In this document: in pieces, positions 2,020-30,800 of the stretch | Position numbering within the stretch: the first letter of the stretch is position 1 | How the letters are laid out: every line of letters starts with the position of its first letter | Virus record (IMG/VR): IMGVR_UViG_3300044638_006750 | Location: 62,001-126,000 of that record | Strand: one strand, 5' to 3' | DNA: 64,000 nt | Position numbers and translations under genes: made by a program | The notes under the pieces: generated by a model | What the model saw: the letters and a program-made list of their open reading frames with translations, nothing else | Databases searched by the model: none | What the model was told of the DNA's origin: nothing

Positions 2020-5000
2020 ATGGCTGGATTTAATTTAACCGCTCAGTTAAATATAGTTGGACCCAATAATCTTAAACCAGTCATATCTAATCTGCGTAAA
2101 CAGCTGAGTAGTGCTGGTGGTAGCATTACTCTAAATATTAATCCTAATATATCTACTTCTGTTAATAATTTAAATAAGTCATTACAGTCTTTGGATAGTA
2201 CATTAAAAAGCATCAATGCTTCTGCCTCTTCTGTCGCAGCATCTTTGAGACAAATAGGATCAGCAGCAGGTACGGTTAATATAAAATCTGTCCCTAAGGA
2301 TATCGCAGCAGTAACACAACAATCTCAAAAGCTACAACAGCAACAGTCACAAACAGCTGTCGCAACAAAAGCATCAACAGATTCTATGGTAGAATTTGGA
2401 AAGCAGTCTGCTTTAGCTATTCGCAGATTTGCTGCTTTTACATTAGTTACTGGGATTATTTATAAGGTTACAAGCGCGTTTGGAAATGCTTCCGCAGAAT
2501 TTATTAAATTCAATCAACAGATGGTACAACTATCTCAGGTTACTGGATCATCCCTACAAAATTTGGCTGGGCTAGAAAGAACCATTACGTCTTTATCAAC
2601 CAGTCTAGGTGTTTCTTCTAGTTCTTTGATAGATGTATCGAGTACCCTAGCGCAAGCAGGCTTATCTGCGCAAGAAACCGAAGAAGCATTATCTGCTCTT
2701 GCCAAGACCACCCTAGCTCCTTCGTTCGGGAATTTAAACAATACCGTAGAAGGTAGTATTGCTCTTATGCGACAGTTTGCGATTTCTACAGGACAACTCG
2801 AATCTGCACTAGGTTCGATAAACACAGTAGCTGCTAAATTTGCAGTAGAAGCAGATGATATTATTACGGCAATTCAGCGTACCGGTGGTGTGTTCGCCGC
2901 GTCTAGTAAAGGAGTAGCAGAAGGCACTGAGGCTCTGAATCAATTTATAGCAATTTTTACTAGTGTTAGAGCAACTACTCGTGAAAGCGCCGAAACGATT
3001 GCTACTGGCTTGAGAACAATTTTTACCAGAATACAAAGAAGAGATACAATAGAGCTATTAAAACAGTATGGTATACAATTAACAGATTTAGAAGGTAAAT
3101 TTGTTGGTCCTTATGAAGCTGTAAAAAGATTGAGTCAGGGTTTGGCTGGTTTAGATACAAGAGATGTCAGATTTTCCTCTATCATAGAAGAGCTTGGTGG
3201 GTTTCGTCAAGTAGGTAAAGTTATTCCATTATTACAACAATTTACTGTTGCTGAAAGAGCCCTAATGGTTGCTCAGAGAGGACAAGGGTCTCTGACCTCC
3301 GATGCTGCAAAAGCACAGCAAGCTTTAGCTATACAGATGGCAAAGGTACAAGAAGAATTTGTTGCGATGGTTCGTAAAATTGGTAGTTCTAATGAATTTC
3401 AGACAATGGTAAAGATGGCTTTAAATTTAGCTAGTGCCTTTATTCAGGTGGCTGATTCAGCTAAATATGCTTTACCAGCAATTACCGCTTTATTAGCTGT
3501 TAAGGGTACTATTGGAGCATTTAGGTTTGCCTCTGGTTTTGCAAGTGGCATGAGAAGAGGTGGAGGTGCTGCTGGATTAGGAGAAAGATTAAGCGGTGCT
3601 CCAAGAGGTTATGCTCAAGGTGGACAAATACCAGTTGCATTAGAACCAGGAGAGATGGTTTTCGTTGGAGAGTCTGCTCGTAGAGCAGGATATGGTAATC
3701 TAAGAAGATTGAACAGAGCCGGTGATCGTCCTAATCCAAGAGTAGCTTTAAATCGTGCCTCCGGAGGAGGCATATTTATGGTTCCTGGTTCTGGAAGAGG
3801 AGACACATTTAAGACTAATCTACCAGAAGGTTCTTTTGTTATAAAAAGAAAATCGGTTAGAGCAGTTGGTGCAGATAATATTGCTCAGATGGCTGCTACC
3901 GGTGGACAAATTAGACAAAATTTTGCCAGAGGAAGTTCCGGAGGACTATCGGCTGCTCCTAGGTTAGCTAGTGCCGGCAAAACTGTGAGAGCACATGTAT
4001 CTACTCCTACATCTATGACCGAAGAGATGAGGCAACAAATTCTAGACTATTATACTAAATCTGGTAAAAAAATTCCTAAAAAATTCCAACCGTCATTACT
4101 TGGTTCGTCATCAGCAGAACTTATAGAAAATCTTACAATAGGGTTACCCTATAGATATAATGAAGCCCTTAAGAGAGGATCTAATTCTGTTATTCCTCTA
4201 AGAGATTTCATCAAAAGTTTCGACAGGCCAGACTTTTTGAGGTCGTTAGGCACAAGTGGCAGGCAAAAAAAACAGTCACTACCACAATTATCGAAAACCG
4301 ATGAAGCAGAATTAATTAGATTACTCAAAAAAGAAACGATAAGAAACTCCACAAGACTCACCAAAGATATTCCAGGTCTTGCAAAAGGCTCTAGGATTAT
4401 ATCCAGTGATACTCAATTACAAAGTTTATCTGGTATAATTAAAGAATTCTATAAGAAAAAACAGACAGCACTAGTAAGACCAGTCGAAATGATGAGCTTC
4501 TATAGTCATCAGGGCAGAACACAACACAGAGACTTTTTACCAACATCATTATCTGAGGTTTTATCTCAAGGATTGTCTAAAAGATATATGGGTGGCTTAA
4601 TTCAGAGGTTAAGCGGAGGTTCAGACAAACCTCTTCAGGGTATGGGGAGGTCACAATTATTGACTGAGGCTAGAAGACTAGGAGTGAATTATGGAAATAT
4701 TGTCTCTTGGTCAGAGTTAGGGAAAAAAGGAGACATAGGAGCACAAGCTCGTTCTAGACTTATTGCAAAACTAGAAGAAGCTAGAATGCTTAGAAAAACT
4801 TCTCAAGCAGCAACATCTGCAAGAGCAAAAAGAACCAATGTTGCAGTTATAGGCGCTATGGCACCTCCCGGAGTTAGAGGTAGTAGCAGTGAAGTTATTA
4901 TTCCTGGTGCGAGAGATAGAAAAACAGGAAAAAGAACACAAGACACTCCAGCTACTCTTCATATAGGTGCTTTAGAGGGTAAAACAGCAGCTAGAGTTAC

Positions 5001-8000
5001 TGCTGTTATTAGAAATCAGACAGCCAGAATAACTCAAAAGGTTATGAAAATTATAGCTCAAGAAGCAAAAATGATTTTGCCAAACGATAATATGGCAAAG
5101 CTTAAAAGAAAACCTATGCATTCTGGTATTGCAGGAGGTTTATTAGAACAAGCTATTTTAGGTTTGATGGGTATAGACAAACCTATGGGCTCTATAGATT
5201 TAGGAGCATCTGGTCTCTCGCCAGAACTAGCCAATGTTTTTGGTATACCGTCTGCATCGGGCGTGCCAACAGATATTACATATGGAGGAGAAAAGGGGAG
5301 AACACTAGAAGAAGCAGCTAAGAGAAAAGCAGTAGGTAAGAGTAGAAACGCCAAAGGACAGAGAACATCTAGTCAGATAGGTAGGGGTTTAGCTGCTATT
5401 AGGGCTTCAAAAGCCATCGGAGGGATTGTACAAAGATTGGCAAATGGAGGAATCACCAGATCTGGTAAATTATCTAGGTCAACTTTCAAACTAATTCCTA
5501 ATGAGAAAGGTATTGGGCCAAGCCCGTTTGCATCAGGGCCAGTAGCCCAACCATTAGACTATAATGCATTAGAGAGATCTGGATTATCAATGGGCTTATC
5601 TCGTCCAATGATAACAAAAGCTATACAAGATGCTAAAATGCTTGGTATTAGTCCAGAAGAAAATATTAGAAAAATAGCATCTGAGGCCCAGTCTAAAAGA
5701 AGACCTGGTTTTACACACAGTACTGATTCTAGATCTATTTTATCTATGCTAAGAAAATCTGGTGGTCCAGTTAATTATGAAGGACCAGCCATGTTTTTTG
5801 CCAAGGGAGGCTCTGTAAAACCTGCTGTTCGCAATGTAGGTTGGATTGACAGTGATTTTCTGAGAAATAGTCCAAAAGCTAAGGCCGAGATGGATAAGCT
5901 CGGTATGAATGTAGATGAATATAAAAGATTTTTAACAGAAGAATCAATTAAAGCTAGAAAATCTGGATCAGTATCGAGATTAACAACGGTGGTCGGTTCT
6001 CCCGGTAGTGGCAAAAGTTCTTTTGCTGAGGGTAATCAAAGAACATCGGTAGCCGATAATGCTAGACTTAGAAAGACACATAGGTTTCCTATAGAAACAC
6101 CAGAAGATGTAGCCAAAGCGAACTCGATAATAGACACAGCGGCCTCTGTTTCTCCAGATAGATTGGTCGATTTGAATCAGTCAGACAGGATCGTTGCATT
6201 ATCTAGTAGCACAAAAGAAGAACAGAAAATATTAAGAAGGCAGTTAAGACATAGAACAGCTACAGGAGATAAACAATACGGTAGAACTCATACTATTACA
6301 GCTCAAGATAGTGGTGAAACTGAAGCGATGCTTCAAATGGGCTTAAGAGACAAAAAGAAATTAGTTACTCTGGGCCTTTTACCCAATTTCAAGAAAAGAA
6401 TTAAAAGACAGAACGAACTACCACTAGTACGAGAAGAACAGGTTAGTCTTGGATTTGGTAGTTTTTCTCCACCCACCAAAGCAGGCCATGATCAGGGCTT
6501 GATGTCCAATGCACAATATAAAAAGCTTGTTCTTGTTGGTCCGAATGAACCTGTTGGGGCCGACCCTCATTCCGCTCGTACAGCACTATTACCACAAGAT
6601 GTTAGACATAGATTGGCTACGAAGGCGTTTCCAGATGCATATGTGAGCAAGAAAACCTCAGGATTTGCTATACCACATGTTTTTGATGTTGGTACTGATC
6701 CAGAAACTGGCAGAAGACTATTTATTCGTAGAGCAAAGGGTAGTGAGGCTTTAGTAGCTGGAAAAGATGAGAAGTCACTCAAAAAATATGAAGAAGCTGG
6801 CTTTGGGGTTAGAGAAGTACCCAGAGACCCAAATGGAGAAAGCGGTACCGCAGCTAGAGAAAGAATATTACGAGGAGATTTTACTGGTTTCCATCCAGAA
6901 GTAGAAAAAGATTTAAGATCTAAAGCCACACAACTCTCTAATAGACAAGAAATATTGCCAAGAATTATTGAGAAAACACAAGAGAGAACTACTAAACAAG
7001 TATCCGAGATTGATAAATCTCTAAGTTCATATCCTTCAAGAATAACAGAGAAGATCAGACAAGAACAACCGGATATGGTTGCGGCTGTAGAATCTTTAAG
7101 AGCTAAAAAAACATCTATTAAAAGTAAAGCTGGTTCTAGACCTCATACAGTTTTAGCTAGACTAGCTAGAAGATATCCAGAAAGATATGGATTGGCACAA
7201 GGAGGTATGCCCCCGAAACCCCAAAAACAATTTGGTAAAATAGGACTAAGATCATCTGGTAAAGAAATAACAGCTTTTTATTTTAAAAATAATGTCAGAG
7301 AAGGATTTGTCACAGCTCATGAGATAGAAAAAGGTATTTGGAATATAGGATTGAGCAAAGCTACTAAAGGTTATGGTCCGAGACTTTACGATGCGGTTAT
7401 GGAAGCTGTAACAGCCAGAGGAGGGGTGTTAACCGCTCATAGAGGGAAGGTGAGTGGTCACGCTAAGAAAGTTTGGGATGTATATGCAAATGAAAGATCC
7501 AAGCCAGATAATAAATATGGTTCTCAGGTATCAAAAATTTCACTAGATTCCAAACACCATACATTAAGTCAAGACCCAAATGATTCTCTTAATTATGGAT
7601 ATCAACAACAGCCAAATATTATCAAGGGTCCAGATATTGTTGATATGAATGACCAAAAATATGATCGTTTTTTACAACAAATGCAGTTTGAGTTTTTAAG
7701 AGCTAATGGAGGAGGTGTCCAACGATCAGTTAGGGGTAATGTAAGACCAATTAAAAAACACTCAATGATTAAACCACAATTACAAAACAATGAACTATCT
7801 ACACTACAATCTCAAATTAATGATCTAGAGTCTAGAAGACAAGCTTTAGCTACTCATACAAAAACTGGATTTTTTGGAGGTAAAAGCAATCCATATCAAA
7901 GAGAAATATATGATTTAGAAGATGAAATAGCAAGATTATCACAAAGACGCTATCTATTATCTCAGAAGAGTGCTCCAACACCCACAGTACTAGCACAGCC

Positions 8001-11000
8001 CAGCGTGATCGCTAGATCCAAACCACAAGCAGTTGTTCCTGTAGCTAGGCCAAAAACAATAATGCCTCAACAGAGACAAAACGTTACTGCCTCATCTCGT
8101 CCTGGTTCAGTCACTATTATGCTGACAAAACAACAAAAATTGGAAATGCGTCAGACCATAGATAGACTTAATAAACAGATAGAACAAGCTAATAACACTA
8201 TAGCCACTTTGAAAAGTCATGATCGAAAACCAGGATTTATTGGTAAATTAACTGGTCAATCGACTAGAAATCCTTATCAAAATGAAATATGGGAAGCAGA
8301 AGCTGAGCAAAGTAGAGCACAAAATGAAAAACGTAAACTACTAGAATTGTATGGAGATCAACTAAATACATATACTGGATTTGCTGCTGGTGGTCATGTT
8401 ATGGCCATGTTGACTCCTGGAGAGGCAGTAATTCCTCCTCCTGAAACTAATCGTATTGGATTATCTACTTTAAGGCGTATGAATTTTGCCGATAAAAATG
8501 GAATGGGTAGAAGCAAATATGCCAAGGGTGGCAATATTGGTATAGTGCCGGGTTCTGGAGACTCAGATTCTTATGGGCCAGTAGCTCTTCCGGTTGGGTC
8601 TTTTGTTATTAGAAAAAGAGCAACAGCAGCCTTGGGGTTGGCCAAGTATTCCAGCGGCGGAGATGTTAAGAAATTTGCTACTGGAGGGTCAACCACAGTA
8701 TCTACATCTCAAACAAATTCTCGTATGCTTGACGTTAGGTCAGCAGGTGGTGTTGATCTTGGTAGCGTATTTGGTACTTCATCTATTGGTAAATTATTAG
8801 ATATAATTAAACCACAACTAGATAGTTTTGGAAATATGATAGATCGTACAACCAAAAGTTTTGGAAATTTGAAACCCGATGTTGTTCAGCAGTTATTTTA
8901 TGAGTATGCCAATGAACTAAAGAGTGGAGTATCTTCAGCAGAAGCACTACGTAATGCAGAAAATAAACTTGCTTCAAATCTTGCAGATTCGGTAGTTTCT
9001 AAAAAGGGTGTTAATGTAAGCAATTCTGGAGTAGAGCTTACATCTCCTATAAATACAAAAAATAAAGATAGTGTTAATGTTCGTAGTGCTGGTGGTATTG
9101 CTATTGGTAACATATCTACTACTAAGGGCCCAGCTGTATTAGATAGTGCTATACAACAACTTAAGCCTCATTTAGATAAGTTCGGATGGATGATAGATAA
9201 GACTACAGCAGAATTTGGAACACTCGATACCAAGGTCGTAAATCAAGCTTATCAGAAATATATTACAGCTATTCGTAACGGAACATCACAATTAGAGGCG
9301 TTGGAAGAAGCTACTCGCACAGTTAAGAGTAGTTCAACTATGGAACAAATGAGAAGAGATGATATCAAGACATCTCGGAGAAAATCACAGTCTGTATTAG
9401 GATCTATAATGGATCCTGTAGGAGCCTTGAATAGATATGGAAGATCTAGGGTATCTCTTGGTCAAGAAAAATTAGATAATCTTACTTTTAGTAAGCAGTC
9501 TCAACAAGTTTTATCTAGTGGGAAAGGTAATTTGGTAGGAGCAGCTACCAATCAAGTATTAAATAATTTAACTAAAGGACTTGGTAATGCATCATTAGCT
9601 GTTTCTGGTTTTATATCTGCTATTGGCAGAGGGGGTGGAGTAGGTAGTGCCATATCATTAATGAAGGCTGGATTTGCCCGCATGGCTGGGAACACTACAG
9701 GACTAGCCGCTAAATTTATTGGATTACAAAGAACTATTGTGGCTACAGAAGGTAAATTAAAGGGTATGACCAAAGGTCAAGCTCAACAAGCTCTTAAAGA
9801 AGGGAAAATTACTAAAGCCGAATATAAAGAGGCTTTTGGACTTAGAGGTAAAAGTAGAGCTGTATACCACAGTGCCAAAGATCAACCACCAGCGTATAAT
9901 GCTAAATTTGAACAAGAAACAAAAACGGCGCGAGCAAAAGCTAAAAAACAAGCTTTACAAGACGCTGGTTTTGGAAGACAAGCGGACACATATATCAAAG
10001 ACGGAAAAACCTATGTAAAAAGAGATGCATCCGGTAAGGCAGTAAATACACAAGTAGGAGCTAAGACACAAGCTATTATGGAAGCTAGGGATATGGCCAC
10101 GGTTAACCCTGCGTCATACGGACCCCAAAGCTCCAATGCTATTTTAGCCACTAGAAGAGCAGGGGCTACTGCTCAAGACCAGATGAGAGCAATAGTTCAT
10201 GGAGGTGGTGGCGGACCTCCTCCAAAAGGGCCAAGAGGAGCTAAAACAGCTGGAGCCGTTAAAGCACCAACCAATGTACCAGATCAACCAGGACAAAGAG
10301 GTGGTGGTGGCGGTGGTATGGGCGCATATATGGCCGAAATGGGATTATCCATGGCTGGTAGCGCTATCGCAGATCAATATGCTAAATCATTAGGAGGAGA
10401 AAAGACTTTAGCCGGTAGACAAGCGGCTAATTATGGCGGTAGTATTGTTGCTGGTGCTAGTACAGGCATGATGATGGGAAGTATGATTGGTTCAGTTGTC
10501 CCTGGTCTTGGCACCGTAGTTGGAGGAGCTATTGGAGCAGGAGTTGGAGGTCTAGCTGGTGCAGGATACGCCGCTCTTAATAGTAAAGAAGTAGCAGCAC
10601 AGTTTAGTAGTGAGCAAAGACAGGATAAAATAGGTAGACACACCACTAAACTTAATGAACAATTAACGACAATGAATAATAGAGATGTGTCTGTAGAAAC
10701 CCGCAATAGAGCCAGGGCAGAATCCAGACAAACTCTAATAAAAATGAATGAACTTTCATCTGAAGAACAAAAATCAGGAATGGAAAATGTTGGATATTTA
10801 TCTTATCAAGCAAGATCCACAGCTTCAGAAAGAGCTAATTCTGCTCAAGGAGTAGCGGACGCAAATTTATCTTCTATAGAAACGGAGATGCAGACTACTG
10901 GCAAAACGCTGGCTCAGGTTAGACAGTCTATGGATCCTGCACAGTGGGCTGCTATGACAAATACCATAGCTGATTCTGATCAAGCATATCAAGAACAAAA

Positions 11001-14000
11001 AGAAAAATTAAGAGGGAATAGTGCCGAACTAGAAAAAGAAAAACAAAAAGCCGTTGAGCGTCAAATGGCTTTCTTAAAGGTAAAAGAAGAAGCTATTCAA
11101 GCAGCCAGAGAAAATGCTAGACTAAATAAAGCGATGCAGAAAGTTACTGTATCGTTTGAAAAAATGGCAGATGCTATGAGCAATGCCGCAGCTAGAGCAA
11201 ATCAAGTTATGAAGAATGGACAGATAGGAATAGAATCCATAGACAATCCATTAGCTGCCAATCAAGTTGGTCAAATTTCTAAATCTGCCGATATAATCTC
11301 CAACCCTGAAGCATATTCGATTAAAGAAGTTGAGGACGCTGCTCGTCAATATGCTGGTGTAGCAGGTTCTAGCTCTGAACAAATGGTTCAAGCTGCTGTA
11401 TTACCTCGCAAATTAGAACAAAGTTTTGGCTCCGCTATGGTTGAAGCAAGAAGTTCTGGCAAGAATGATGAAGAGACCAGAAGCTCTGTTAAGTCCGCTG
11501 TTATGAATACTGTGAAAGCTGCATTTGGAGAAAATATAGGCAATGACATGCAAAAGAAGATAGATGACTTCCTAAACAGCAAGGCGGCATCTGGAGAATT
11601 ACAAAATATAGATTTTAACGATCTGTTAAAAGAAATTCCTGGTCTTGCAGACAAGATGGCCTCCTCTAGCAAAGTTATGAAAGCACTACAAGATCAGGCT
11701 CAATCTGCTGCCAATGCTATTGCAATGATGGGTGATGCTGCCCAGAAAACAGCATCTAAAGGCCAAGATATCAGAAATGCTAGAGCAGATACTTTTTCAA
11801 CTATTGCTAATAGTACCTTGGCATTTAGAAGAGGTACTGGAGAGAAAATTTCTTGGCAGGCTGATGCTGGAGTAAGAACACAAGCTCGTGCAATAAGATT
11901 AGGTACTACAGCTGATGTTGCAGCCAGTCCACAAAAAATGTTAGGAAGATACCTTGCTCTTCAACAGGGTGCCGACGCAGCCTCTAAGAGACAACAACAA
12001 GTGAATGAAGAACAAAAGGGGGCAATGCTTGCTGGAGGAGATCAAACTCAGGGTGCTATAGATAAGATGCAACAGGCTGCCAATACCACAGCAGAATTTG
12101 CACAAGCTACAAAACAAGCTCGTGAAGAAATTTTAGGATTGCCGAATGATATTAAAGATAACATTAATGGTATCTTAAGTGAATTACAAGACGTAATGCA
12201 AGAAAGAAGCGCTAAAATCGGAGCAGCTAGTGGATTCATGGAGAAGATGTTAACATCTACTCCTAAAGACCTTAGAAAGATGGGCAACACATTCAATAAT
12301 CTTAATCAAACTCTATCTGGGAAAGGTGTTAGTTTCGAAGAGTCATATTCTGCCAAAACTGCGTATGATCAAGTCAGGAATCAGGGCGGGACTCATATGC
12401 AAGCCCAAAGAGCCGCCCAAGAAGCATACGCTCAGGAAAGCAGTGATACGATTAGTATGGCTAAAGAATTAGCTCCTCTCCTAGGAGCCGTTGATCCAGA
12501 CGCACAAAATAAGATGATGGCTAGTGTTTATGAAAATATGTTTGCTGCTAGAGGCATGGATCCTTCGCAAATGAAGGTTGGCGATAAGAGCATGAAAGAC
12601 TACTTGGATATGATGAAGAAAGGAGCTAAAGAAGATCCAAAAGTTAAAGCTTTGAACGATGCTTTAGCAGCACAACAAGCAGCTCTTGTACAAGCTAATG
12701 CTGCTATTGAAGCAATTTATACTAAAGATCAGGCAGACATACAACAAAAAACAGGAGAAGTTATTCTAAATGCTATGCAACAAGGCGCAGAAGCTGTAAA
12801 AAAAGCTATGGAAGAAGCTAAAGTTGCTGGTATAAGCCCTCCGGGAGAAGCAGGAGCAGCTAACTCTCCACAAGCTCAGGCTCAAGCCCTTAATGAAGAA
12901 CAAACTCAACAAAGAAAGGATCAGAACCTCAATGATATAGAAGCAGCCAAAAAAGTTATTAATGATCCGGCAGCTTCTAAGGAAGACAAAGAAAAAGCTG
13001 AGAAAGTTATTGCAGAAAAAGAGCAAGAGAATGCGGTCCTTACAGGTGGACTAAGCGGCACAAGAGGACTATCGTCTGCTGAAAATATGACATTTAAAGA
13101 ACATGCTCTTCCGGGAGAAACTCCTGAAGATTTTACGAAGAGAAGGCGCAAATTGATGGATATGACAGGTCAATCTACTCCACAACAAGTGTCACAAAAT
13201 CCAACAACTCCACAACAAAACGCTGCTGGAAATGCGGCAGCAACACCTTCACCAACTACCACATCATCTACCCCATCATCCACATCTCCTGCTGGTTCAA
13301 CTTCTCCAGCCGGTCAGGCAGCAGCATCTCAAGCTGCTACTCCACAACCACCAGTAAGAGCAATTACTAGTCAGCAAAGAGAAGACGAGATTGTTCTACA
13401 ACAAGGAGAGATGGCACAAAACGAGAAAATTATTAACGATCTATCTTCTAGCGAAGAAGACAAAGAAAATGCTAGACTTGAGATACAAGGATCACAACAT
13501 AAAATAGCGATGTTACAAGGAAAAAGCAAGGAAGAAATAGCAGAAAGTGTTTATGGAACTAAATATGAAGACATGTCTCCTGAACAGAAAGAATACTTAG
13601 ATCTACAACATTCAGCTTACTCAAATAACTATAGTAGACAATATGGTAGTTTAGCTCCGCAGACCCCAGCTCCAACTTCTCAAGCCGCAAGTAATCAGGC
13701 TGCGGCACCAGCACCCAATACCGGCACTGGTCCATCTTCTCCTCCGTCGTTTGGTCAAACCATGCAAGCTGCTATGACAGCAGGACAGAATAATAATGTT
13801 GCTTATAGATCTCAAGATGGTTTATCAGGTGCTACTCGTAGTGTGATTGCAAATCTGCCTCCGCAAGTGCAAGGTATGGTTACTCAAGCCGCACAAAGCA
13901 ATCCAGCTTTAGCAACAGCAATACAAAATGGAGACCTAGCAGCTGCACAAGCAGCATTACCACCAGAAGCAATGGCTCAGATACAACAAGTAATGGCAGG

Positions 14001-14874
14001 GGCTGGTAATGCGGCATTAGCATCCGGTTCTATGCAAGCATTAAATACTGAAAGACAAGTTTCTGCCGCTCAAGGAGCAATGGCTACTGGTTCTGTTATG
14101 ACCAAACCCTCTACTAGTACTGGTCAAAAGACACCACAATGGCAGCCCTCAAGTGGTCCAATGGGATTAAATAATGTACATCAAGAGGCGTATCTCAGAG
14201 GTATGACCACGCAAGAAGTAAATTATGAAAGACAACAACAATATTTGAGTAGCTTGAATCCCGAGACTAGAGATATAGAAAAAAGGAAACTTGGTAAAAG
14301 ATTATTAAAACCAAGCGAACGACAAGAAGCTGCCATACAAGCACAGAAAGATAGTGCAGCTGCCGCGGCGGCACAACAGCCAGGGGTAGTTCCAGCCCCT
14401 GTAGGAAGTGCTCCACAAATGCCACAAACTGTACCCGGTCAAAATACCAATGGTCAGATGGTGCCTCCAACCGCACCTGCTACTCAAGCCGGATATGTTA
14501 CTCCTCCATCAGAAGCTGGTTCTCCGGTTCCGGCTCCAAGACCAGCACAAAACGTACCCGGACAACAAAATCAAGGCGCTGGTGTATTACCCGGTATGGG
14601 CGGATTCGAAGCCTTTGCCAGCAAATTGGATACATTATTGACCAAATTAGGAGAGGTAAATATTCCTACGGAAATTAGACTTACAAGCGAAAGTATAGGA
14701 GTCAATGTCACATTAAATGGTGCGGAAGTTATGAATAAGATGCCAGAACAAATTAGAGGTCAAATAGTACAAGAAGTTGTAGCAAAACTTCGAGAATACG
14801 ACAAGGGAACATCTGGAGAAGGTGCAGCACTAAGTCCAAAAATTGGTGGACAATCTACGAATACAGACGTATAA
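2020..14874 (+). CDS. Giant tape measure protein (4284 aa) with internal enzyme-like cargo domains
   Basis: SD AGAGGA at about 2005. The N-terminal region (about 2500-3360) has TP901/PhageMin_Tail-type motifs (LAQAGLSA..., INTVAAKFAVEADDI, AETIATGLRTIFTRIQR, LGGFRQVGK). Lambda gpH-like YAQGG...PGE.V / FAAGG motifs, long Ala/Gln/Lys-rich helical regions and a glycine-zipper hydrophobic segment are present. Confidence 0.92.
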   Translation: MAGFNLTAQLNIVGPNNLKPVISNLRKQLSSAGGSITLNINPNISTSVNNLNKSLQSLDSTLKSINASASSVAASLRQIGSAAGTVNIKSVPKDIAAVTQQSQKLQQQQSQTAVATKASTDSMVEFGKQSALAIRRFAAFTLVTGIIYKVTSAFGNASAEFIKFNQQMVQLSQVTGSSLQNLAGLERTITSLSTSLGVSSSSLIDVSSTLAQAGLSAQETEEALSALAKTTLAPSFGNLNNTVEGSIALMRQFAISTGQLESALGSINTVAAKFAVEADDIITAIQRTGGVFAASSKGVAEGTEALNQFIAIFTSVRATTRESAETIATGLRTIFTRIQRRDTIELLKQYGIQLTDLEGKFVGPYEAVKRLSQGLAGLDTRDVRFSSIIEELGGFRQVGKVIPLLQQFTVAERALMVAQRGQGSLTSDAAKAQQALAIQMAKVQEEFVAMVRKIGSSNEFQTMVKMALNLASAFIQVADSAKYALPAITALLAVKGTIGAFRFASGFASGMRRGGGAAGLGERLSGAPRGYAQGGQIPVALEPGEMVFVGESARRAGYGNLRRLNRAGDRPNPRVALNRASGGGIFMVPGSGRGDTFKTNLPEGSFVIKRKSVRAVGADNIAQMAATGGQIRQNFARGSSGGLSAAPRLASAGKTVRAHVSTPTSMTEEMRQQILDYYTKSGKKIPKKFQPSLLGSSSAELIENLTIGLPYRYNEALKRGSNSVIPLRDFIKSFDRPDFLRSLGTSGRQKKQSLPQLSKTDEAELIRLLKKETIRNSTRLTKDIPGLAKGSRIISSDTQLQSLSGIIKEFYKKKQTALVRPVEMMSFYSHQGRTQHRDFLPTSLSEVLSQGLSKRYMGGLIQRLSGGSDKPLQGMGRSQLLTEARRLGVNYGNIVSWSELGKKGDIGAQARSRLIAKLEEARMLRKTSQAATSARAKRTNVAVIGAMAPPGVRGSSSEVIIPGARDRKTGKRTQDTPATLHIGALEGKTAARVTAVIRNQTARITQKVMKIIAQEAKMILPNDNMAKLKRKPMHSGIAGGLLEQAILGLMGIDKPMGSIDLGASGLSPELANVFGIPSASGVPTDITYGGEKGRTLEEAAKRKAVGKSRNAKGQRTSSQIGRGLAAIRASKAIGGIVQRLANGGITRSGKLSRSTFKLIPNEKGIGPSPFASGPVAQPLDYNALERSGLSMGLSRPMITKAIQDAKMLGISPEENIRKIASEAQSKRRPGFTHSTDSRSILSMLRKSGGPVNYEGPAMFFAKGGSVKPAVRNVGWIDSDFLRNSPKAKAEMDKLGMNVDEYKRFLTEESIKARKSGSVSRLTTVVGSPGSGKSSFAEGNQRTSVADNARLRKTHRFPIETPEDVAKANSIIDTAASVSPDRLVDLNQSDRIVALSSSTKEEQKILRRQLRHRTATGDKQYGRTHTITAQDSGETEAMLQMGLRDKKKLVTLGLLPNFKKRIKRQNELPLVREEQVSLGFGSFSPPTKAGHDQGLMSNAQYKKLVLVGPNEPVGADPHSARTALLPQDVRHRLATKAFPDAYVSKKTSGFAIPHVFDVGTDPETGRRLFIRRAKGSEALVAGKDEKSLKKYEEAGFGVREVPRDPNGESGTAARERILRGDFTGFHPEVEKDLRSKATQLSNRQEILPRIIEKTQERTTKQVSEIDKSLSSYPSRITEKIRQEQPDMVAAVESLRAKKTSIKSKAGSRPHTVLARLARRYPERYGLAQGGMPPKPQKQFGKIGLRSSGKEITAFYFKNNVREGFVTAHEIEKGIWNIGLSKATKGYGPRLYDAVMEAVTARGGVLTAHRGKVSGHAKKVWDVYANERSKPDNKYGSQVSKISLDSKHHTLSQDPNDSLNYGYQQQPNIIKGPDIVDMNDQKYDRFLQQMQFEFLRANGGGVQRSVRGNVRPIKKHSMIKPQLQNNELSTLQSQINDLESRRQALATHTKTGFFGGKSNPYQREIYDLEDEIARLSQRRYLLSQKSAPTPTVLAQPSVIARSKPQAVVPVARPKTIMPQQRQNVTASSRPGSVTIMLTKQQKLEMRQTIDRLNKQIEQANNTIATLKSHDRKPGFIGKLTGQSTRNPYQNEIWEAEAEQSRAQNEKRKLLELYGDQLNTYTGFAAGGHVMAMLTPGEAVIPPPETNRIGLSTLRRMNFADKNGMGRSKYAKGGNIGIVPGSGDSDSYGPVALPVGSFVIRKRATAALGLAKYSSGGDVKKFATGGSTTVSTSQTNSRMLDVRSAGGVDLGSVFGTSSIGKLLDIIKPQLDSFGNMIDRTTKSFGNLKPDVVQQLFYEYANELKSGVSSAEALRNAENKLASNLADSVVSKKGVNVSNSGVELTSPINTKNKDSVNVRSAGGIAIGNISTTKGPAVLDSAIQQLKPHLDKFGWMIDKTTAEFGTLDTKVVNQAYQKYITAIRNGTSQLEALEEATRTVKSSSTMEQMRRDDIKTSRRKSQSVLGSIMDPVGALNRYGRSRVSLGQEKLDNLTFSKQSQQVLSSGKGNLVGAATNQVLNNLTKGLGNASLAVSGFISAIGRGGGVGSAISLMKAGFARMAGNTTGLAAKFIGLQRTIVATEGKLKGMTKGQAQQALKEGKITKAEYKEAFGLRGKSRAVYHSAKDQPPAYNAKFEQETKTARAKAKKQALQDAGFGRQADTYIKDGKTYVKRDASGKAVNTQVGAKTQAIMEARDMATVNPASYGPQSSNAILATRRAGATAQDQMRAIVHGGGGGPPPKGPRGAKTAGAVKAPTNVPDQPGQRGGGGGGMGAYMAEMGLSMAGSAIADQYAKSLGGEKTLAGRQAANYGGSIVAGASTGMMMGSMIGSVVPGLGTVVGGAIGAGVGGLAGAGYAALNSKEVAAQFSSEQRQDKIGRHTTKLNEQLTTMNNRDVSVETRNRARAESRQTLIKMNELSSEEQKSGMENVGYLSYQARSTASERANSAQGVADANLSSIETEMQTTGKTLAQVRQSMDPAQWAAMTNTIADSDQAYQEQKEKLRGNSAELEKEKQKAVERQMAFLKVKEEAIQAARENARLNKAMQKVTVSFEKMADAMSNAAARANQVMKNGQIGIESIDNPLAANQVGQISKSADIISNPEAYSIKEVEDAARQYAGVAGSSSEQMVQAAVLPRKLEQSFGSAMVEARSSGKNDEETRSSVKSAVMNTVKAAFGENIGNDMQKKIDDFLNSKAASGELQNIDFNDLLKEIPGLADKMASSSKVMKALQDQAQSAANAIAMMGDAAQKTASKGQDIRNARADTFSTIANSTLAFRRGTGEKISWQADAGVRTQARAIRLGTTADVAASPQKMLGRYLALQQGADAASKRQQQVNEEQKGAMLAGGDQTQGAIDKMQQAANTTAEFAQATKQAREEILGLPNDIKDNINGILSELQDVMQERSAKIGAASGFMEKMLTSTPKDLRKMGNTFNNLNQTLSGKGVSFEESYSAKTAYDQVRNQGGTHMQAQRAAQEAYAQESSDTISMAKELAPLLGAVDPDAQNKMMASVYENMFAARGMDPSQMKVGDKSMKDYLDMMKKGAKEDPKVKALNDALAAQQAALVQANAAIEAIYTKDQADIQQKTGEVILNAMQQGAEAVKKAMEEAKVAGISPPGEAGAANSPQAQAQALNEEQTQQRKDQNLNDIEAAKKVINDPAASKEDKEKAEKVIAEKEQENAVLTGGLSGTRGLSSAENMTFKEHALPGETPEDFTKRRRKLMDMTGQSTPQQVSQNPTTPQQNAAGNAAATPSPTTTSSTPSSTSPAGSTSPAGQAAASQAATPQPPVRAITSQQREDEIVLQQGEMAQNEKIINDLSSSEEDKENARLEIQGSQHKIAMLQGKSKEEIAESVYGTKYEDMSPEQKEYLDLQHSAYSNNYSRQYGSLAPQTPAPTSQAASNQAAAPAPNTGTGPSSPPSFGQTMQAAMTAGQNNNVAYRSQDGLSGATRSVIANLPPQVQGMVTQAAQSNPALATAIQNGDLAAAQAALPPEAMAQIQQVMAGAGNAALASGSMQALNTERQVSAAQGAMATGSVMTKPSTSTGQKTPQWQPSSGPMGLNNVHQEAYLRGMTTQEVNYERQQQYLSSLNPETRDIEKRKLGKRLLKPSERQEAAIQAQKDSAAAAAAQQPGVVPAPVGSAPQMPQTVPGQNTNGQMVPPTAPATQAGYVTPPSEAGSPVPAPRPAQNVPGQQNQGAGVLPGMGGFEAFASKLDTLLTKLGEVNIPTEIRLTSESIGVNVTLNGAEVMNKMPEQIRGQIVQEVVAKLREYDKGTSGEGAALSPKIGGQSTNTDV
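5812..6400 (+). other. P-loop NTPase/kinase-like domain within the TMP
   Basis: Walker A in TTVVGSPGSGKSSF (GSPGSGKS at 5995-6018), a Walker B-like IIDT, and a LID-like RRQLRHR, as in the NMP-kinase/AAA_33 fold. Confidence 0.7.
6440..6920 (+). other. HIGH-superfamily nucleotidyltransferase (cytidylyltransferase/NMNAT-like) domain within the TMP
   Basis: GFGSFSPPTKAGH (6451-6489) matches the G-x-F-x-P-P/T-x-x-G-H signature. LVAGKD matches the VxGxD strand. ESGTAARERILRGDF (6838-6882) matches the S-[AG]-[ST]-x-x-R...GD motif. Confidence 0.72.
7210..7700 (+). other. GNAT-like acetyltransferase domain within the TMP
   Basis: Motif A-like ATKGYGPRLYDAVME (about 7360-7404), then GVLTAHRGKVSGHAKKVWDVY (motif B-like). 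Confidence 0.62.
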
Positions 14875-20374: not shown

Positions 20375-22675
20375 ATGTTAAGTTTACAATTTACAAAATC
20401 AATTATACAAACTAATAATCCAGATGTCTGCTCATTAGGAGTAGAAATCTTTTTAAATATTAGTGGTTTAATACCTGGACACAGTTATTCTCTAAATTTT
20501 GTCAAGATCACCGAAGATGGTATTGCTAGTTTTGATCCTCCTTCTGAAACTTTTGTCGCAAATTCTACAGCGATTGGTAATTTTCTGGTTAAAGTAGTAT
20601 GTCAGGATGCTCGATACTATATTTTCAATGCTTCTTTAGTCGATTTGTCTACAGAAGAAACCGTAGAAGATAACATTACTCTTGACTGCGGAGGCATACC
20701 TCCAGGTATCACTCCAACTCCAACCAATACTCCCACACCTACAAATACCCCAAGTGTTACTCCTACTACTACTCCGACCACAACAGTAACGTCTACAGTT
20801 ACTAATACTCCGACGAATACCGGAACGCCTACCTCCACGCCGACACCAACTGCTACCAATACTCAAACGCCAACCAATACTGTCACCAATACAGCAACCC
20901 CTTCACAAACACCAACTAATACTCCAACTCCAACACAGACACCAACGATTAGTATTACTCCTACACAGACAACAACAAATACTCCAACTATATCTGTGAG
21001 CCCCACAAATACACAAACACCAACAAATACTGCTACTCCTACACAAACGCCAACTAATAGTCCGACTAATACAACTACCCCAACGAATAGTGCAACTCCT
21101 ACTAACACCAAAACTCCCACAACCACACCAACAAATACCTCAACACCCACTCAATCTAATACTCCAACTATTACAGCATCTCAAACTGCTACTCCAACGA
21201 CAACCTTAACTCCTACAAATACAACATCTATTACTCCAACACCTAGTCCAACCAATTATCCTTTGGACGAATGTATTGGTACGGATAAACCAGCCTACTA
21301 TCTAGGATGCTGCACAAACAATAAGCTGATTTCTCCACACCACAGGATTCAGATTGTATTTGTTAACCTAAATATTGGAAATAGATACTTTTTTGACATT
21401 GTTGGAACAGATAATGTTAAAGTATATAATACTGAAGATAATTTTGTGGCTCAATATTATGAATATCTTACTACAGCATTTATTGCGGTTAAGACGGAAT
21501 TTTGTGAATTAAATTACTTAACTATCAATTTGTATGATGAAAATAGAAACTTGGTCAAGACAAGATCGGTCTCAGTATCTTGCGAGTCTGACCAGAATCA
21601 AAATGTAAATGATTGTCAAGGATCTTCTGTATTCTTTATAAATGAACCAGAAAATAGGAATATTTGTTTCTATTTTGATGATGAATGTCGTAAAATTATC
21701 AATGTTACTCCTACTCCTTCACCAACAAATACTGCTACTCCCACGACTACTCCAACATCGACTCCAACTCAAACATCGACTCCAACTCCAACGAATACAC
21801 AGACCCCAACTAATACTATAACTCCCAGTACTACCACAACCAATACTCCTACTCCAAGCGTAACCAGTACAAACACTCCAACCCCAACAACTACTACAAC
21901 CACAACTCCAACGGCAACTGTTACCAGTAGCCCCACAGCAACTAATACTCCTACTCCAAGTTTGGTTAATAGATGCGCTGCGAGAAGTTATTTACTGGTA
22001 AAAGTCGCAACAACAGAAAATTTAGGATATACTAATCTATCTGGTAGTTTTAGATCAGCAATTATGACTGGATTTAGAACTCCATTAACTATTGATGGTA
22101 TAATATTAAATGTTGGTGATTTAGTTTTAGTCAAGAATAATATAAGTAGTACTTGGACAGGATCAGATGTTTATACCGTACAGAATGTAGGAAGTCAATT
22201 CGCACCATGGGTTTTAATATCCTATGTTCCAACCTCTGGAGATTGGTGTACAACATTCTCTGACAATATAGGTGGTACAGAAGACAAGTATTGTCCTGTT
22301 TTTGTGCAACAAGGAAATACTAACGGTAAGACAGAATGGTTACTACCAACTAATTTCTCCACACAGGGCGCGATTCCATCAGCTTTAAGGTGTGTAGACG
22401 ATGTAATTATTAGACAGGTCAGATTAGCTACAACATCTAATATAACACTATCTGGTACTCCAGTTATAGATGGTGTTCAAACGGCAGAAAACGATAGAAT
22501 TCTAGTCAAAGATCAAGATGATCCTATACAAAATGGTATATATATTGTAGCAGGCAATAATACCGCATGGTATAGATCTGGTGATGTTAGAGATAATTTA
22601 AGCTTAATTACAGAACTTAGAGTATATGTGTCACAGGGTATCGTTAATAAAGACACTGTTTGGACTATAGGTTAA
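20375..22675 (+). CDS. Fibre-like protein (766 aa): module A, long PT linker, module A, PT linker, two phage fibre domains
   Basis: The C-terminal part has two copies of the common phage motif VR(V/L)ATT.N(I/L).LSG...IDG....GD(R/L)(I/V)LVK(D/N). Confidence 0.8.
20710..21252 (+). repeat. Pro/Thr-rich linker (TPTNTPT-like), about 180 aa
   Basis: Translation is almost entirely T/P/N/S. The DNA is synonymously scrambled rather than an exact tandem repeat. Confidence 0.9.
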
Positions 22676-27882: not shown

Positions 27883-30800
27883 ATGGCGATATATGTTAAA
27901 GGATATAATCCCTGGAATAATCCACAGATATACGGCAGTTTTGGAGACACAAGTTGTGGACAATATCTAGGCGCTGGTGGTATCTATAATGTAACAGCCT
28001 CGTCTTTATTTTATCATAACACTTTTGCTCCAGAGTCTATTGATATTAGCACTGGGGTACAGTCATTTAGCTCTTGTTATACAAATCCGATGGCTGCTGG
28101 TTATAATAATTCTCCAGATTCATGTCCACCATATGTAGGGTCTTATGCCATAGTAGATAATAATGGGGACGTCTATCTACATGCTCCCAAGCATTATGTT
28201 TATGCTGGTCAGTTTGATGCTAATCCTTATCAAACTATGTTTAATAAGTTTGCTTCTTGGCCAAAGCTTGCAGATAAAAAATGGCAAAAAGTTATATTAA
28301 CTCCATTCTCTCTTCATGCCCTTACAACAACTGGACAGTTATGGACTATTATCAACAACAATGTCTATCAAAGTCTTTCTCAGAGTAGTCTAGAGGCATA
28401 TAGTGGTTTAGGTTTAGCATACAGAAGAAGAGTTCCAACTATTTTCGGTAGTATAGCTGGTGGTGATACTTTTATCAGTAGAACATATCCTATGTATGAT
28501 CGTCCATTATCATCGGTATTTAGTTATGCAAATACTATAGATATTTATAGCCCACAAAGAATCGCTTTGTTTGGACCGGAATATAGGAAGACAATTGGAG
28601 ATGGTAATCAAGGAACACTTACGACCATACTTAACGCTAAGGCTGGCATATCTTCATGTTCAAATGGACCTAGTTGGAGATTTAACGATGGTGGTAATTA
28701 TGCTAAAATTTTAGATATGTATAATTCAGTTTACATTTCTTCTCATAGTAGTGTTGCTAATGATGGTAGAACTAATTATACCTCTCCAGGAGATAATCAG
28801 CACAGATCATATACTGTTCCTAGTCCTTATTATACTGATTGGCCCAATATCAGGTCTGGTTCACCAACCTGTGTTCCTGCAAGTAGCGGCAATTGGTTAA
28901 CAAGAATTACTTTAGAAGGTTCTATAGCAGATAATTGGAAAGATATATATCATGTCCATGGATGTTTTTATGGGATCAATACTCTAAACCAAGTTTATGT
29001 TTGGGGTCCAAACGTCCCTACTCTCGGAGTAGTAGACTATCCTAGATTAACGACCTTGGGCGCAGACGGAGGATTAAGGAATATACAAGGAGGATCTACT
29101 GGCCCAGGCTACTCAGCATATACAGCATATGGCATAGACGGTAATGATGATCTAAAATTATGGACCGATATTTCATTAACGCCTGTAACTGTTTATGGTT
29201 CATTTAAAAAAGTTATAGCTGTAAATTCTCTTATGGGCTATAAAAGTGCAGCAAATGGTTTTTTCATAGCTTTAACCAAAACAAATGAAATAGTATTATT
29301 ATACAACATATCATATAATCCAGGTATTGCATTCGATAGTAATCTGAGACCAGCACATAGTTTATCTACCATACCACTAGCATCAACACGAGGAGCGACA
29401 TGGACAGATATTGCTCTAAGTGCTCCGTGGTTTGGATCCGGATCGGGTGTTAGTATAGACGCTATTAGGAGCGACGGTACGGTATTCAATATCTCTGGTA
29501 TTACTACGACATTTGCTGGTATAGTAACACAGCTATCTAATCAACTATCTGCAAATTCATATTTTGCAATGACATCTAACGATGAATTTAGTCAAACCTA
29601 TGCAAATTATTCTGGCTCAAGTATCTTTTCAAATTCTTTAAGTAATATTAATAATACTACTACGAAATATATTACATTCCCCAATGTAGTATATAGCGAT
29701 ACCAATTCATTGATTCCCACACCAACTCCAACCGTAACAAGTACAAGCACACCACCTCCAACACCAACAGCTACTCCAACTAGAACTCCTCCTCCAACCC
29801 AAACTACGACGAATACTTCTACAGTATCTGTTACTCCTACTCAAACACCAACCGGAACAACTACATCAACACCAACCAATACCACAACTCCAACTGTTAC
29901 GCCGACCACAACTCCTACTGCTACCAATACAAGAACACCAACCAATACTTCCACTCCGACTAATACTACAACTCCGACTAATACTCCCACAATCAGTCAA
30001 ACACCAACCAACACCCCCACCATTAGTTTGACACCAACTAATACCGTCACAAGCAGCACTACACCAACTAATACTGCTACTAATACACAAACCCCAACTA
30101 ATACTGTTACGTCTACTATCACTAGCACTCCGACACGTACACAATGTTATTTTACCGACGTTATAAAAAATCCCAGTTTTGAAAATAATGATACTAAAAT
30201 ATTAGATAATTGGGATTATTATAATGTTTATGTATTAGGTGGGCCACAATTAACTGCCGGCTACCTCGGTGGTCAAGGAGGAGTAGGACCAATAAACGAT
30301 GGTAAATATGCTGTTAGTTTAACAGGAAATGCAAATGGCTGGATAAGTCAGGCATTCTATACCAATGTTGGAGATGCGTATGCTATACGCTTCAAATATA
30401 CTGGAAATCCAGGCAACACTAACACACCCAATAATGTATTGAAAACATTAAGAGTCGGTATTGGAGAAAATGATAAATCTATAAATTGGTCTAATGTTAG
30501 TGATAGAGATAATATTAATCCAATATCTTCTACAATGCAAGTGACAGACTTCTCGTTCTCTGCTTCATCTTATCCTTCTCATAGCTTAACAAATTTACAA
30601 TGGGAAGACGGAATCATAACATACACAGCAACGTCCGAATTAACTAGAGTTGTTTTTCAGGATTTATCTACAAGTGTCGATGGTAATGATGGAATCATAA
30701 TAGATAACATCATATCATGTGGTGCTCAATATATAACAAAAACTCCAACGCCAACTTTTACGAATACTCCAACCAATACTCCCACTCAAACAGCAACAGC

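Follow-up and report, generated by a model that had tools for sequence, protein, structure and literature searches.

Background

Enzymes that are built into the tail tape measure protein (TMP) of a phage and ejected with it have been found in several systems, such as the C-terminal metallopeptidase of T5 pb2, the Rpf-like domains of mycobacteriophages and the TMP lysins of staphylococcal phages. Each of these TMPs carries one such domain, which works on the periplasmic peptidoglycan. The giant TMP described here, encoded on a 64-kb stretch of DNA (the window) of the 232,683-bp IMG/VR record UViG_3300044638_006750, likewise has its putative enzymes built in, but it holds several exchangeable domains, among which are predicted nicotinamide mononucleotide (NMN) adenylyltransferase (NMNAT)-like, P-loop and GNAT folds that use cytoplasmic cofactors. 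To our knowledge, TMPs are otherwise known with at most a cell-wall enzyme.

A second class that invites comparison is formed by the polyvalent proteins, which have GNAT domains among their cargo and a processing metallopeptidase, and for which delivery together with the DNA was proposed (Iyer, Burroughs, Anand, de Souza and Aravind 2017; PMC5512222). The resemblance lies in the giant polypeptide, the many unrelated enzymatic domains and the extreme shuffling between relatives. Polyvalent proteins are head-packaged or built on conjugation scaffolds, and tape measures are not mentioned in PMC5512222, whereas the array in the window has a tail TMP as its scaffold, employs one shared linker, consists of domains that Pfam does not see and contains no zincin-like (HExxH) motif. 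Some relatives of the TMP do have HExxH cassettes, which recall the processing metallopeptidase of the polyvalent proteins. Outside the present family we know polyvalent injected proteins only on scaffolds other than a TMP, and within an incomplete library of the literature no link between a TMP and an NMNAT or a GNAT was apparent from titles and abstracts.

The third point of reference is given by lambda gpH, Douge gp16 and the TMP of PDB entry 8rk3. These share with the TMP of the window the PhageMin_Tail domain and a glycine-rich segment of the type FAxGG/GEFV/YAxGG and GPGTGTSDS. In lambda gpH there is one such segment, near the C-terminus and without known enzyme activity, whereas the window TMP has two copies of the module in its N-terminal half and reuses the FAxGG unit of this module as the joint of about six unrelated domains. 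The gpH protein is processed to gpH* and a gpHC of ~14 kDa by cleavage within its glycine-rich region, where both the site and the protease were described as still unidentified in the 2025 Ur-lambda paper (PMC12617516).

Results and discussion

A giant tape measure protein with an array of cassettes

The protein of interest is encoded by a single open reading frame (ORF; 2020-14874, + strand) of 4,284 amino acids without internal stop. PF10145 (PhageMin_Tail) was recovered at residues 188-393 (E 1e-22; 81.4 bits versus a cut-off of 33.2) and PHROG 4211 and 167, annotated as 'tail length tape measure protein', matched as well. These matches identify the ORF product as a giant TMP, in agreement with an earlier reading of the window made from the letters alone (the sequence-only reading). 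That reading had moreover described a series of 13 related x-G-G motifs within the protein, which it held to be the boundaries of unrelated, globular-looking and Lys/Arg-rich segments that included a kinase, a nucleotidyltransferase and a GNAT. All 13 motifs are present in the DNA where they had been reported and all lie inside this ORF. On the basis of sequence analysis and structure models, residues 528-2226 of the TMP are an array of basic, cysteine-free domains that are predicted to fold independently on the TMP scaffold.

The core of the TMP (residues 1-527; 2020..3600) has 45-80% identity in 16/16 relatives and constitutes a family (F0) of 32 members. The cargo array that follows is flanked by two copies of a module of ~100 residues, M1 (residues 528-640; 3601..3939) and M2 (residues 2119-2226; 8374..8697), which lie ~1,600 residues apart. 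In between are found, in this order, the basic cassettes B (residues 641-856; 3940..4587; isoelectric point (pI) 10.2) and C (residues ~868-1130; 4621..5409), cassette D (residues ~1145-1258; 5452..5793), cassette EF with its halves E (residues ~1265-1470; 5812..6429) and F (residues ~1471-1723; 6430..7188), cassette G (residues 1730-1893; 7207..7698) and the helical cassette H (residues 1900-2118; 7717..8373), which is inserted between G and M2. All these features, like those of the TMP mentioned below, are on the + strand. The segments between the motifs are indeed rich in Lys and Arg, which together make up 12-18.5% of the residues, with pI values of 9.6-11.6. Moreover, the two cassettes for which AlphaFold2 (AF2) models were made, EF and G, came out as globular and not as coiled coil, with a predicted local distance difference test (pLDDT) score of 89.6 and 77, respectively.

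A database search provided 16 relatives of 2,567-7,122 amino acids (P0001-P0016), to which IMG/VR and JGI metagenomes contributed another 27 loci, resulting in a non-redundant set of 38 proteins; the cassette alignments were made with relatives of at most 5,000 amino acids. The relatives are all metagenomic, with contigs that reach 248 kb, and the sample names, the sole criterion used here, suggest an origin in lakes and other fresh waters. Among GenBank phages no match was obtained with megablast and tblastn yielded one weak match, to M2, while no relative was present in 185,579 GTDB genomes. The size of the family was estimated with a profile of EF made from 13 sequences, for which a set of 1.84 billion representative proteins yielded 171 matches; 89 of these (all representative clusters) had E <1e-30. 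The latter are giant TMPs, nearly all of 2,000-7,300 amino acids, that have EF at residues ~600-2,000.

Cassettes are gained, lost and reordered at a shared linker

The motif is strongly enriched. The pattern [FYLMW][AS]xGG occurs 8 times in the TMP, whereas 2,000 residue shuffles gave 1.1 on average and never more than 6. All 8 copies lie at residues 531-2223, where 0.46 would be expected within residues 505-2235. In the 38 non-redundant relatives it is found 308 times versus 37.9 expected. A logo of 307 sites revealed the full linker as GG-x-(V/I)-(Q/R)-(K/R)-(F/Y/L)-(A/S)-x-G-G-x-(V/A/I), in which Val has a frequency of 51% two residues past the GG, although that position was left free in the pattern search. 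The codons that underlie the motif differ from copy to copy, which indicates that conservation acts at the protein level. A repeat or recombination signal at the level of the DNA, considered as another origin of the linkers, was ruled out on the same ground.

The claim that the motif is a cassette boundary could be maintained for 5 of the 13 copies, which are junctions of unrelated segments, and had to be abandoned for the other 8, which are internal to M1 and M2. M1 holds four motifs at residues 530-638 (GYAQGG 3607, RASGGG 3754, MAATGG 3889 and NFARG ~3919) and M2 another four at residues 2120-2223 (GFAAGG 8377, KYAKGG 8515, KYSSGG 8644 and KFATGG 8671). The five true junctions correspond closely to the points where blocks of homology to the relatives begin or end. 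Linker 1 (RYMGG-LIQRLSGG; residues 854-867; 4579..4620) is at the start of homology blocks that begin at residues 844-857, and the doubled motif of linker 2 (KAIGG-IVQRLANGG; residues 1131-1144; 5410..5451) is where blocks stop (residues 1143-1146). At linker 3 (FFAKGG; residues 1259-1264; 5794..5811) the EF homology of five relatives begins, at residue 1260, and at linker 4 (GLAQGG; residues 1724-1729; 7189..7206) the EF homology of seven relatives stops, at residue 1725. Linker 5 (RANGGG; residues 1894-1899; 7699..7716) coincides with blocks that stop at residues 1898-1906. The complete list of starts and stops of the BLAST blocks against the 16 relatives reads 531, 624-640, 844-857, 1143-1146, 1246-1260, 1725-1728, 1898-1906, 2119-2121 and 2220. 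Family-wide, 15% of the breakpoints are within 12 residues of a motif versus 6% expected, where it should be noted that the breakpoints are not independent and that the nominal p-value is accordingly not to be read at face value.

To delineate segment families, the 38 proteins were cut at the motif and the pieces were clustered with a coverage of at least 60% of both partners. Apart from the core, the main families are formed by the M-module pieces (31), G (27), EF (17), a long block that follows M2 (14) and a family of ~120 residues (F5) that includes cassette D (13), and there are smaller ones of 9, 9 and 5 members. Both the presence and the order of the families vary from protein to protein, by gain, loss, reordering and exchange at the linkers. 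The identity is mosaic as well. For instance, P0004 has 86% identity to the window TMP in G, 34% in EF and 27% in C, whereas P0002 has 43% in G, 33% in EF and 74% in C. The identity of C is 74-83% in P0001, P0002 and P0003 together, while B is shared with P0003 only and in part with P0008. The F5 family is found in 13 TMPs, in which it is placed either before or after EF. P0001 and P0002 also have cassette H, and P0005 and P0006 have part of it, whereas elsewhere G abuts M2. Homologous TMPs thus do show presence/absence variation at the motif boundaries, with breakpoints at the linkers and families that have been shuffled, and we consider it well supported by these alignments that the motif marks the boundaries of cassettes.

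The junction directly upstream of EF illustrates both the constancy of the linker and its limits. It reads GG-(L/M/V)-(I/V)-Q-(K/R)-F-x-x-GG, or something close to that, in 16/19 relatives but not in the other 3. Two IMG/VR loci, L009 and L011, employ the junction peptide G-(Y/F)-(I/V)-P-N-F-A instead, at the same boundaries and in 5 and 8 copies, respectively, and FAxGG is almost absent from both.

The M module is shared with lambda gpH

M1 and M2 have 38% identity (E 2e-16) in a direct pairwise comparison, and M2 has 49-63% identity to the module that most relatives have after G. A self-BLAST of the whole protein reported no repeats; the relation between M1 and M2, as well as that between the repeats located after M2, came from pairwise comparison. 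A profile of the module matched three sequences in the PDB, all of which are TMPs, and nothing that is not a TMP: Douge gp16 (PDB 8zdo; two copies, E 1.9e-4), the TMP of 8rk3 and, weakly, lambda gpH (residues 747-785, E 0.25). The sequence-only reading had named a FATGG...GEFV...YATGG arrangement close to gpH's C-terminus, and this proved correct: FATGG is at residues 733-737 and YATGG at residues 778-782 of gpH, with the GEFV strand in between. By profile similarity, the M module is an old TMP element and a distant relative of the glycine-rich region in gpH. In the available TMP structures the modelled parts are gpH 818-849 (PMC10721106) and Douge gp16 1658-1699 (PMC13033339), which are outside the M-type region.

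Cassette EF combines a P-loop NTPase and a nucleotidyltransferase

EF is a unit of 470 residues that was modelled with a predicted template modelling (pTM) score of 0.84. In the E half the Gly and Lys of the Walker A motif (GSPGSGKSS) never vary (positions G67 and K73 in the alignment of EF) and the pLDDT is ~90. Foldseek connected this half to MeaB/ArgK-type proteins, MipZ and shikimate kinase (E 4e-3 to 5e-2). The earlier designation as a kinase therefore holds at the level of a P-loop NTPase fold that carries Walker A. To name a kinase would be an overstatement: among the P-loop proteins the best matches belong to the G3E GTPases and not to kinases, with a Foldseek probability of 0.33 for shikimate kinase and of 0.12 for phage PseT. 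The conserved residues D104, D130, R153 and R163 would suit a kinase without being diagnostic of one.

The F half, which is followed by a helical tail, could be annotated via the tail of the list of EF profile matches. There we found stand-alone proteins of 160-200 amino acids that match the second half of EF only (E 1e-8 to 1e-4). These are PF01467 cytidylyltransferase-like proteins, and in NCBIfam they match NMNATs of the archaeal/NadM type (PRK01153, TIGR01527), three of them above the curated cut-off. The signatures G-x-F-x-P-x-T-x-G-H and S-G-T-x-x-R are shared, and G221, P225, H231, S349 and R354 are still invariant when the stand-alone NMNATs are added. In addition, G230, R343 and T351 are at least 90% conserved. 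Besides 13 TMP cassettes and 3 fragments, this alignment contains 12 stand-alone proteins, the majority of the PF01467 or NMNAT type. The top Foldseek match of EF was the NadM NMNAT 2qjt (probability 1.00, E 2.5e-3), and in BFVD the matches were phage cytidyltransferase-like and NMNAT proteins (probability 0.96-1.00). In a profile search of the PDB, phosphopantetheine adenylyltransferase (PPAT) and other HIGH transferases scored nearly as well. Taken together, the profile and fold evidence bears out the nucleotidyltransferase of the earlier reading, and according to both the F half is a HIGH-type nucleotidyltransferase that is closest to NMNAT. Compared to NadM and the archaeal NMNATs, to which EF is linked by (H/T)-x-G-H and S-x-T-x-x-R, by its nearest stand-alone relatives and by its top Foldseek match, the cassette differs in that the nucleotidyltransferase is fused behind a P-loop domain, which is the reverse of the order in NadR, in its helical tail of ~100 residues and in its lack of a direct family match.

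Cassette G has a GNAT fold

G is the most conserved cassette. It was found in 16/16 relatives and in 27/38 of the non-redundant set, which contains many truncated proteins; in fact, it is present in every relative of which the relevant part was recovered, and usually M2 comes directly after it. Across 25 sequences there are 25 invariant columns, including G-Y-G-P-x-L-Y-D. The core of the AF2 model has a pLDDT of ~85, and the 50 best PDB matches in Foldseek are all GNAT acetyltransferases (probability 0.85-1.00, best E 2.7e-3, TM-score at most 0.47). The G-Y-G-P-R of G is located at the position expected for the (Q/R)-x-x-G-x-(G/A) loop. No Pfam or NCBIfam match was obtained, and a search of the PDB with a G profile returned noise only. 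Judged by its modelled fold G is a GNAT domain, as had been read from the sequence before, and as such it may bind acyl-CoA.

For the remaining cassettes of the window, B, C, D and H, the searches led to no assignment. B and C had no match in Pfam, NCBIfam or the PDB. H showed weak Pfam matches of the coiled-coil type only, and a two-fold internal repeat that was noticed by eye alone.

Cassettes that occur in relatives of the window TMP

Several cassettes are found in relatives and not in the window TMP. Family F6 is present in nine TMPs (for instance L005 residues 701-1146, L010 residues 1706-2017, L028 residues 1242-1668 and L032 residues 1652-2109) and has an invariant L-Y-H-E-(L/M)-T-H-Q, whereas family F13 (L014 residues 2142-2424 and L025 residues 1884-2226) has an invariant H-E-x-F-H-x-I-Q-G. 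On account of these signatures we regard F6 and F13 as candidate zincin-like peptidases. Ten HExxH-bearing cassettes of relatives had no significant match in Pfam, the best being Peptidase_M91 with E 0.012.

The F8 cassette is another one that is confined to relatives. It comprises ~150-200 residues (e.g. L002 residues 600-779, L014 residues 693-887 and L025 residues 658-811) with the consensus Y-D-G-D-S ... R-L-x-G-x-D-x-Y-E, which, we assume, resembles the signature of staphylococcal nuclease (SNase).

Delivery of the cargo

TMPs leave the tail before the DNA and form a conduit across the envelope (PMC12617516, PMC13033339), and for the metastable T5 pb2 storage in a non-native state and later refolding were proposed (PMC10038345). 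By analogy, we think that the cargo of the TMP is probably, though by no means certainly, delivered into the host at ejection, ahead of the DNA. The array would be stored in the tail in a non-native and extended form, refold in the host and act at the very start of the infection. The TMP's C-terminus, at the tail tip, would exit first, so that the N-proximal cargo would exit last, beside the end of the DNA. As enzymes of the EF and G type need ATP and a mononucleotide, and acyl-CoA, all of which are cytoplasmic, refolding would most likely occur in the cytoplasm of the host. The linkers would then act as flexible joints that permit each domain to unfold and refold on its own. Indeed, in the AF2 monomer models the linkers on either side of G have a pLDDT below 50 while the domain itself is well ordered, and the linker is thereby predicted to be a flexible joint between well-folded domains. 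The composition of the protein also fits this picture of refolding. There are zero cysteines in the 4,284 residues, as is the case in 30/38 of the related giant TMPs and in lambda gpH, which is in line with a TMP that would cross the envelope unfolded.

An opposite view would be that the cassettes merely add length to the ruler, or work in the producing cell, and that nothing functional is delivered. The embedded motif of the TMP of mycobacteriophage TM4 reportedly contributes to tail length, and synthesis of TMPs takes place late, when both ATP and acyl-CoA are at hand in the cytoplasm. Nevertheless, this view appears improbable to us. The elements T-x-G-H, S-G-T-x-x-R, the Lys of Walker A and G-Y-G-P-x-L-Y-D are invariant between proteins that have just 27-40% identity, and such invariance of catalytic signatures argues against mere filler. 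In addition, the fast turnover of the cassettes and the mosaicism are typical of cargo that faces a conflict, and the total lack of cysteine suits a protein that has to pass an envelope.

Several points weigh against a delivered array of enzymes and should be kept in mind. The enzymes might do their work in the cell that makes the phage and not in the one that has just been infected. Unfolded storage must be assumed, because folded domains of 50 kDa, in three to six copies, should be too large for the lumen of the tube. No cassette was matched directly by Pfam (searched with the whole TMP, nine sub-segments and eight whole relatives), by NCBIfam or by phmmer against the PDB, and PhageMin_Tail was the only Pfam domain that passed in the TMP and the eight relatives. 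The link to the nucleotidyltransferases is a transitive one, via the stand-alone proteins, with a Foldseek E of only ~3e-3, and among the cassettes the structure models cover EF and G. More generally, presence in the virion, ejection, refolding and activity have all been inferred, from sequence and predicted structure.

Is the linker a cleavage site or a hinge?

The sequence-only reading had proposed that the motif is possibly a cleavage site as well. In that case (F/Y/L)-(A/S)-x-G-G would be the site of a protease that cuts the TMP during tail maturation or after ejection and so frees the enzymes. The protease would come from another part of the genome or, as far as some relatives are concerned, from the HExxH cassette of the TMP itself. 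The linker has properties that one would look for in such a site: it is short, exposed and flexible, and it is conserved at P5, P4, P2, P1 and P2' around the GG. Viral polyproteins and other precursors that are cut at Gly-Gly are known, such as the adenovirus protease sites, pp220 and pp62 of African swine fever virus (ASFV), the LxGG sites of papain-like proteases and the double-glycine leaders of bacteriocins. With these the linker shares a small hydrophobic-x-x-G-G signature that is repeated at the junctions of domains, and it is different in that the hydrophobic residue is at P5 and not at P4, that P2' is conserved too and that no cognate cysteine protease was found among the ORFs scanned in the window.

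The comparison with known TMPs points in both directions. The linker unit is the very unit of the glycine-rich region of gpH, in which gpH is cut (PMC12617516), and cleavage after the FATGG of lambda (733-737) would give products of 80.1 and 12.2 kDa, close to gpH* and the ~14-kDa gpHC, although this fit in size is circumstantial as the site is unmapped. In T5 pb2 cleavage frees an enzyme domain by separating it from the remainder, but it does so after an arginine and not after GG (PMC10038345), and the T5 site is the sole TMP cleavage site that has been mapped. The F6 HExxH signature in nine relatives, together with the second HExxH family, parallels the metallopeptidase of the polyvalent proteins (PMC5512222), whereas the HExxH cassettes remain without significant Pfam match, and the TMP of the window has neither an HExxH motif nor a cysteine. 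Furthermore, no protease was detected among 19 ORFs of the window, which is 64 of ~233 kb, with one library used for each ORF (PHROGs for the ten that flank the TMP and Pfam for nine downstream); the scan yielded Ig-like/tail-fibre and RCC1-repeat matches only. Neither was a protease seen in the 10 kb upstream of one relative, nor in the precomputed Pfam marks near the TMPs of relatives. Finally, 8 of the 13 motifs are inside the M module, which looks folded and would be destroyed by cutting. All in all, we find a polyprotein that is cut at the linkers rather doubtful.

Alternatively, the motif could stay uncut and serve as a hinge or a short beta element, which would leave the cargo as tethered beads on a string and which may perhaps pair the three or six TMP chains or contact the tube wall or an assembly chaperone. 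The doubled GG-x-V-Q-K-F-A-x-GG-x-V has the look of a strand with a turn on either side, the conserved M module has the unit built into it, and the failure to find a protease speaks for an uncut element too. The AF2 monomer models, on the other hand, give the linkers no structure, and a plain hinge would require neither a conserved aromatic residue nor a conserved Ala/Ser. The replacement of the linker by G-(Y/F)-(I/V)-P-N-F-A in a sublineage is more readily understood for a structural element than for a protease site, but it could equally reflect co-evolution with a protease that is specific to that sublineage. We therefore regard a purely structural linker as a serious option, albeit one that falls short of being probable.

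A more far-reaching version of the cleavage model is conceivable, in which (F/Y/L)-A-x-G-G is a general processing signal of TMPs, also responsible for the conversion of gpH to gpH*, that has been multiplied here into an injected polyprotein; a TMP-borne HExxH enzyme or one acting in trans would then release cytoplasmic enzymes at the time of DNA entry. This we consider unlikely. Were it true, the NMNAT-like adenylyltransferase could pre-empt NAD-depleting immunity, with the acetyltransferase G being delivered alongside.

The C-terminal part of the TMP

Directly after M2 there are two tandem repeats of 115 residues (8725..9414; 38% identity over 87 residues, E 6e-20), each of which starts with VRSAGG. 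They are followed by a glycine-rich hydrophobic region (residues 2471-2870; 9430..10629) with 16.8% Gly and long runs of Gly, Ala, Met and Ile, which is a candidate for a membrane-inserting part of the protein; weak matches to the PF13441 Gly-zipper and to DUF1269 were obtained in the TMPs of relatives. The rest is the acidic C-terminal third (10630..14871), composed of a long segment that looks helical by its composition, a low-complexity tract of ~500 residues rich in Pro, Gln, Ala and Thr (residues 3701-4195) and a conserved C-terminus of ~90 residues. Residues 2770-3731 and 4001-4279 are conserved in relatives. The charge of the TMP is clearly split, as every block up to residue 2870 has a pI of 9.3-11.6 and the last 1,400 residues have a pI of 4.9-5.8.

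Genomic context

The gene order in which genes of ~345, ~104 and ~292 amino acids precede the TMP and one of ~863 amino acids follows it was kept in seven relatives. Because these neighbours have no family matches, their roles can be deduced from the order only. In the window two overlapping ORFs are located directly upstream of the TMP gene, 716-1045 (109 amino acids) and 951-1928 (325 amino acids), both on the + strand; their sizes are like those of the ~104- and ~292-residue genes just upstream of the TMP in the relatives. The position just upstream of the TMP is the usual site of the frameshifted pair of tail-assembly chaperones. No slippery heptamer of the simple X-XXY-YYZ form was present in the overlap of the two ORFs.

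The gene-like ORFs of at least 100 amino acids in the window are all on the + strand, with tiny gaps in between. No tRNAs were found in the 64-kb window, and the G+C content is 32-43%, peaking within the TMP gene. Downstream of the TMP gene, ORFs 27883-33174, 42165-44885 and 44897-48166 (1,763, 906 and 1,089 amino acids) contain RCC1-like beta-propeller repeats (PF25390, PF13540, PF00415) and presumably encode tail fibre or baseplate proteins. Other giant ORFs in that part are 33186-39845 (2,219 amino acids) and 52904-58675 (1,923 amino acids). The last 85 residues of the product of ORF 20375-22675 (766 amino acids) match PHROGs for tail fibre, virion structural and head decoration proteins (E 1e-13 to 6e-20), and they look like a shared surface-display domain.

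Conclusions

As far as sequences and predicted structures can tell, the polyvalent array on a TMP scaffold is real, widespread and undescribed. It joins the classes of the TMPs and the polyvalent proteins in at least 89 clusters, all from uncultured phages, with swappable domains that are invisible to standard annotation. EF, G, the families F5-F8 and the HExxH families represent new domain families, and the shared linker constitutes a concrete candidate for the cleavage site of lambda gpH. If the cargo is delivered, the lumen of the tail would be a route for counter-defence or host takeover at the level of proteins, before any phage gene is expressed.

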